Shown here piece by piece: positions 59,731-62,745 of a stretch of DNA of 64,000 bases. The stretch lies in NCBI RefSeq assembly GCF_009834535.1, contig NC_045717.1, positions 19,592,001 to 19,656,000 on the forward strand, written 5' to 3'. Both the position numbers and the translations under genes were made by a program. Each line of letters begins with the position of its first letter. Positions within the stretch are counted from its first letter, which is position 1. Source of the DNA: Camelus ferus. Lineage: Eukaryota. The notes below the pieces were generated by a model, which was given only the letters and a program-made list of their open reading frames with translations, was not told the origin of the DNA and ran no database searches.

Positions 59731-62745
<3,015 letters not shown>

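Follow-up and report, generated by a model that had tools for sequence, protein, structure and literature searches.

In mouse KLF1 (EKLF), lysine 74, within the motif L-K-S-E, is the SUMO site that has been studied by experiment (Siatecka et al. 2007, as cited in PMC9443461). SUMO-dependent repression of megakaryopoiesis is attributed to the same study in the passages of PMC9443461 and PMC11098557 that cite it. A K74R knock-in abolished the SUMO acceptor site, and the mice kept their steady-state numbers of red cells and platelets (PMC9443461). Lifespan and anti-tumour phenotypes were reported for both K74R and K74A mice (PMC9443461, PMC11098557), a literature that the original prediction for this locus had cited correctly, and the SUMO site itself has been called “well-conserved” (PMC11098557). 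The content of Siatecka et al. 2007 and of Yien & Bieker 2013 is given here as it is relayed in PMC9443461 and PMC5920080. In human KLF1 (NP_006554.1) the motif is V-K-S-E, with the lysine at position 54; K74 in L-K-S-E is the numbering of the 376-aa mouse form. Mouse KLF1 records come as a 358-aa and a 376-aa form (P0202/P0209 versus P0205/P0208), and K74 of the longer form is K56 of the shorter one (UniProt P46099, NP_034765.3). In addition, NP_034765.3 has S-H-H-V at a place that is S-L-H-V in the other mouse entries.

The window analysed here, a stretch of 64,000 nucleotides from the camel Camelus ferus, contains an intact KLF1 gene of three exons. Its features are as follows.

59731 to 59817, plus strand: KLF1 exon 1, starting at the ATG and encoding codons 1–29 (M-A-A-A-E-T...D-F-L-K), followed by a GT donor
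60475 to 61315, plus strand: KLF1 exon 2, with an AG acceptor and a GT donor, within a 345-codon stop-free stretch
60541 to 60555, plus strand: remnant of the ancestral SUMO motif, CAC GTG AGG CCT GAG = H52-V53-R54-P55-E56, in frame in exon 2
60547 to 60549, plus strand: codon 54, AGG = Arg, in the context F-H-V-R-P-E-L
62570 to 62745, plus strand: KLF1 exon 3, with the end of zinc finger 1, zinc fingers 2 and 3 and the stop codon

All junctions carry GT/AG, and the spliced product of 367 aa is identical at 367/367 positions to the RefSeq Camelus KLF1 (P0121, Krueppel-like factor 1, Camelus ferus / genus Camelus); the splicing pattern is drawn from these sites together with this identity. Exon 2 runs from the end of TAD1 through the SUMO-motif region, TAD2 and a proline-rich region and takes in most of zinc finger 1. 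The best matches of its translation are named KLF1 proteins from across mammals, and the top hits for the gene are KLF1 without exception (100% identity to Camelus, 90% to whale). Pfam placed EKLF_TAD1 (PF16832) at residues 22–46 (E 1.6e-16) and EKLF_TAD2 (PF16833) at residues 61–87 (E 5.9e-13), both above the curated cut-off, so that R54 falls between the two activation-domain cores, in the short linker that joins them. The zf-C2H2 family matched three stretches (E 4.4e-17), and zf-H2C2_2 matched as well. Three C-terminal C2H2 fingers of the SP/KLF type, TAD1 and TAD2, relatives named KLF1, the gene structure and the gene neighbourhood all identify a KLF1/EKLF orthologue. We conclude that the camel has here an intact and ordinary orthologue of KLF1/EKLF, the erythroid transcription factor.

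The original prediction had read positions 60541–60555 as H-V-R54-P-E, with numbering that runs without gaps against human H-V-K54-S-E, and had found no other psi-K-x-E site in the transactivation region. All three statements hold: the codons are exact and in frame, human K54 lies in V-K-S-E of NP_006554.1, and the third can be extended to the whole 367-aa protein, in which none of the 10 lysines (K29, K167, K270, K279 and six in the fingers) stands in a K-x-E/D context. Measured against psi-K-x-E/D, the camel sequence retains both flanks, the hydrophobic V53 at −1 and the acidic E56 at +2, and has R54 in place of the acceptor lysine. The stretch thus reads as a recognisable remnant of the ancestral psi-K-x-E consensus in which the acceptor has been replaced. 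Arginine has no epsilon-amino group and cannot form an isopeptide bond with SUMO. The only loosely SUMO-like context in the protein is of the inverted type, E-P-K167-A. Judged by these residues, camel KLF1 is probably not SUMOylated at its activation domain.

Human and camel KLF1 share a 29-codon exon 1, gap-free numbering up to residue 54, the flanks H-V-[K/R], an acidic tract downstream and the W-D-L-D-L-L core of TAD2. They differ in that the human protein has a lysine consensus site followed immediately by a two-residue deletion, whereas the camel protein has arginine and keeps P-E-L-E-D. The mouse protein resembles that of the camel in the position of the motif region directly upstream of TAD2, and its K74R allele likewise lacks the acceptor lysine. 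At the codon level, however, the counterpart of mouse K74 (AAA) is camel E56 (GAG), two codons downstream of the R54 column, as determined with Mus pahari. The column of camel R54 and human K54 is serine (AGT) in Mus pahari, and most mammals have Glu (GAG or GAA) at the position of its lysine. Human K54 and mouse K74, which had been equated as one site, thus belong to one motif region but to two different columns. Raw MAFFT columns had placed the mouse lysine two columns to the right and had misplaced echidna; they were replaced by the codon comparison and a direct motif scan.

The motif scan found psi-K-x-E with an acidic tract ahead of the W-D-L-D core in echidna (HVKKE), two turtles (LKQE), a caecilian (HIKQE) and bichir (HIKTE), which indicates that the motif is ancient. 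All sampled rodents lack lysine at the ancestral column and have Ser, Gly, Ala or Ile instead (P0037, P0046, P0047, P0050 and P0056 for the loss and re-creation of the site in rodents); the codon is AGT/AGC (Ser) in the two examined, Mus pahari (L009) and Heterocephalus (L010). Most of the mouse-related clade has a new consensus site two residues downstream (muroids including Mus, Rattus, Grammomys, Meriones and Nannospalax, and also Jaculus, Castor, Thomomys and Dipodomys), while Neotoma has the lysine at this position and lacks the acidic residue at its +2 (V-K-S-Q). Ahead of the zinc fingers, squirrels, naked mole-rat, Fukomys, guinea pig, chinchilla and gundi are without a consensus site. 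Among bats, yangochiropterans have a lysine at the same +2 position in a weak motif (P-K-L-E or P-K-S-E) and rhinolophoids have reverted to V-K-A-E; pangolin has I-K-D-E nine residues downstream. We lean slightly towards a history in which the site is ancient in vertebrates and was repeatedly turned over in placentals, with loss on the Scrotifera stem, loss on the rodent stem followed by re-creation in the mouse-related clade, and regain of a lysine near the site in yangochiropteran and rhinolophoid bats and in pangolin. The mouse site would then be a rodent re-creation and K74R an engineered change on a SUMOylation-adapted background, unlike the old, clade-wide state of the camel. On these comparisons, “well-conserved” is an overstatement for the KLF1 SUMO site and needs qualifying. 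A search of open-access text returned no paper on loss of the site in non-rodent mammals, nor one that sets human K54 and mouse K74 apart as different columns.

This turnover bears on whether KLF1 of the camel and other Scrotifera could still be SUMOylated at a non-consensus lysine, keeping its repressor function despite the change from lysine to arginine. Non-consensus SUMOylation is common in proteomic surveys, which speaks for this alternative. Candidate lysines are K167 (inverted-type E-P-K-A, a context resembling [E/D]-x-K-psi), K29 or one in the zinc fingers. The repeated re-appearance of a nearby lysine (PK[LS]E in yangochiropterans, VKAE in rhinolophoids, IKDE in pangolin, LKSE in mouse-related rodents) also hints that a SUMO site is useful here. 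Yet K74R abolished the acceptor site in mice (PMC9443461), although mouse KLF1 also has lysines in its basic region and zinc fingers, and cetartiodactyls, perissodactyls, carnivores and fruit bats have gained no replacement consensus over a very long time. We consider SUMOylation at such a lysine unlikely. We prefer the reading in which camel KLF1, like that of cattle, horse, dog, cat and whale, would escape SUMOylation at the site that serves in mouse and, by inference, in human. Whatever repressor function the camel protein has would then proceed by SUMO-independent routes or contacts, or through non-consensus lysines.

To place R54 among mammals, KLF1 proteins were compared across orders. 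Arginine was found in every sampled cetartiodactyl, perissodactyl, carnivore and pangolin, and also in fruit bats and yangochiropteran bats, in forms such as H-V-R-P-E, H-I-R-P-E, H-M-R-P-E and H-V-R-S-E, with H-M-R-L-E in pangolin. The taxa are distributed as follows.

Cetartiodactyla with Arg: Camelus, six named cetaceans, hippopotamus, Bos, Bubalus, Capra, Moschus, Cervus, Rangifer, Muntiacus
Perissodactyla with Arg: Equus, Ceratotherium (rhino)
Carnivora with Arg: bears, dog, fox, cats (including big cats), hyaena, ferret, elephant seal (Mirounga), panda
Pholidota with Arg: the pangolin Smutsia
Bats with Arg: the fruit bats Pteropus and Rousettus, and five yangochiropteran bats
Bats with Lys: Rhinolophus (horseshoe bats), Hipposideros (leaf-nosed bats)
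Other taxa with Lys: Eulipotyphla (Talpa, Sorex, Suncus), primates, colugo, tree shrew, rabbit, seven afrotherians, armadillo

Camelidae are represented in this comparison by Camelus, alpaca and llama not being among the named matches. Genomic DNA from eleven species allowed the codons themselves to be compared. AGG was used in all seven Arg lineages (Camelus, Equus, Ursus, Eptesicus, Pteropus, Eschrichtius and Smutsia) and AAG in the Lys mammals Talpa, Loxodonta and Rhinolophus, within flanking codons (CAC GTG ... CCN GAG) that align without gaps. At this site the KLF1 of cattle, horse, dog, cat, whales and fruit bats, all Scrotifera like the camel, reads H-V-R-P-E with AGG just as the camel protein does; it differs from the latter elsewhere by scattered activation-domain substitutions, e.g. 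at S46, R48, F51 and R62. The sampled cetartiodactyls, perissodactyls, carnivores and pteropodids all lack a K-x-E/D ahead of the zinc fingers.

For parsimony, 54 taxa were scored on an order-level tree that was entered from established phylogeny, independently of these sequences. Arginine occurs in 19 of the 54, all 19 being Scrotifera; other cetaceans and ruminants, fox, big cats, hyaena, ferret, seal and panda were seen with arginine outside the scored set. Fitch parsimony gave one K-to-R change on the stem of Scrotifera and one R-to-K reversal in Rhinolophoidea. Taken with the distribution, this indicates that the camel Arg54 was inherited from an ancestor common to whales, horses, dogs and bats. 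The relationships within Scrotifera are debated, and under any resolution the arginine is far older than camelids. Arginine could instead have arisen several times independently, in bats, Ferae and ungulates: the lysine (AAG) of rhinolophoid bats demands either a reversal or independent gains, and AAG and AGG are separated by a single transition that can recur. However, independent gains cost at least three steps, against two for one origin and one reversal, and all seven examined Arg lineages use AGG; we regard multiple origins as improbable. With a single origin, one AAG-to-AGG transition on the stem branch of Scrotifera, the group that unites bats with carnivores, pangolins, whales and both odd- and even-toed ungulates, would have replaced the ancient psi-K-x-E acceptor lysine just upstream of the TAD2 core.

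The same distribution bears on the proposal that this animal is a natural K74R equivalent, in which Arg54 would be camelid-specific, possibly adaptive, and aid elliptical, osmotically resistant red cells or health span. Residue 54 is indeed arginine, the protein has no other consensus site, and the phenotypes of K74R and K74A mice concern lifespan and tumours (PMC9443461, PMC11098557). Against this, the same residue and codon are found in all sampled Fereuungulata and in most bats: whales, hippopotamus, ruminants, horse, rhino, carnivores, pangolin, fruit bats and yangochiropteran bats all have AGG or arginine. Arg54 showed neither camelid restriction nor an association with phenotype across Cetartiodactyla, Perissodactyla, Carnivora, Pholidota, Pteropodidae and Yangochiroptera. 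As far as is known, the red cells of other Arg-bearing animals are ordinary and discoid, and the lifespans of these animals vary widely and are unremarkable. K74R mice themselves keep steady red-cell and platelet values (PMC9443461). The clade-wide arginine, the discoid cells and the steady state of the mutant mice together leave the link to camelid elliptocytes without support, and the camelid-specific proposal, refuted by the distribution, is scarcely credible. In open-access text we found no relevant paper linking KLF1 to camel red cells. The original prediction had allowed that the change might be shared widely among ungulates, and this fallback proved true, the sharing being wider still (carnivores, pangolin, bats). 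The alignment of KLF1 across mammals that it had proposed shows arginine to be common with no phenotypic association, an outcome that it had itself named as one that would refute it.

We also considered whether loss of the site goes with longevity, given that whales, bats and naked mole-rat are without the ancestral lysine. This link was rejected: dogs, cats, cattle and guinea pigs lack the lysine too, whereas humans and elephants keep it.

The residue is already present in public annotation and is ordinary for the clade. We put a probability of about 90% on the whole explanation, namely that this is an ordinary KLF1 in which Arg54 is an old, clade-wide state, presumed un-SUMOylated, with no camelid link. 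Arg54 would then have no specific tie to the elliptical red cells or the lifespan of camelids, and we infer that it is functionally neutral.

As the normal state of a superordinal clade, the residue has little import for camel biology. Its comparative value for the KLF1 field is modest and lies in the qualification that a “conserved SUMOylation site” needs. Cow, dog, cat and horse are naturally without the acceptor lysine and show no obvious benefit in lifespan or tumour resistance, and a naturally acceptor-less KLF1 tempers extrapolation from the K74R mouse to the proposed human K54R cell therapy (PMC9443461). The natural Arg proteins are also material with which to test the need of KLF1 for SUMO. 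If they are truly un-SUMOylated, SUMO-dependent repression would not be general in mammals, and the Arg species would be ready-made natural controls for the K74R phenotype.

Sequence support for codon 54 was assessed over positions 60300–60900. Contigs assembled from three DNA runs, which belong to three studies and two organisms, cover all of the interval and show no differences, a contig from an RNA library covers 60534–60789, again with none, and all sampled 31-mers of the interval are present in fourteen public runs (two organisms). The AGG, for which confirmation in reads had been proposed, is thus borne out at the level of contigs rather than raw reads; such support comes from assembler contigs, which lose rare variants, and some of the runs may be the source of the assembly itself. 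That AGG is an assembly or sequencing error for a true AAG is a general possibility in any GC-rich exon, and here it is very unlikely, with next to no probability left to it by the contigs without differences, the fourteen runs with all sampled words, the identical RefSeq Camelus protein and the presence of AGG in other lineages. A 151-nt RNA-seq contig (60372–60522; run X16, depth 2) crosses the boundary of intron 1 and exon 2 at 60475 without a joint. It points to unspliced pre-mRNA or contaminating DNA and is no evidence of expression.

Elsewhere in the window, Pfam found CR6_interact (GADD45GIP1) at 11852–12424 on the plus strand (E 4.7e-28) and a weak, GCDH-like match to the C-terminal Acyl-CoA_dh_1 domain at 50905–51537 on the minus strand (E 1.6e-4, just under the cut-off). 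Across ten long stop-free stretches outside the gene, the scan gave nothing beyond these two matches. With the GADD45GIP1 domain at about 12 kb and, on the opposite strand, the GCDH-like exon at about 51 kb, both upstream of KLF1, the window is consistent with KLF1 synteny; the order in the window presumably corresponds to the GADD45GIP1...GCDH-KLF1 neighbourhood of human chromosome 19.

Upstream of the coding sequence, inspection by eye showed a GATA motif on the minus strand (CTTATCA, 59603–59609), about 110–130 bp upstream of the KLF1 ATG, followed by a CCAAT box (59620–59624). We take the two, at 59603–59624, to resemble the GATA-plus-CCAAT proximal promoter of mouse and human EKLF. Just upstream of this promoter region, positions 59440–59500 hold a short imperfect direct repeat of GAACC[CT]CCAGCCCCT-like units. 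The window also contains five runs of N, of 140–172 bases each (8400–8564, 10974–11144, 17003–17174, 31979–32118 and 57331–57501).
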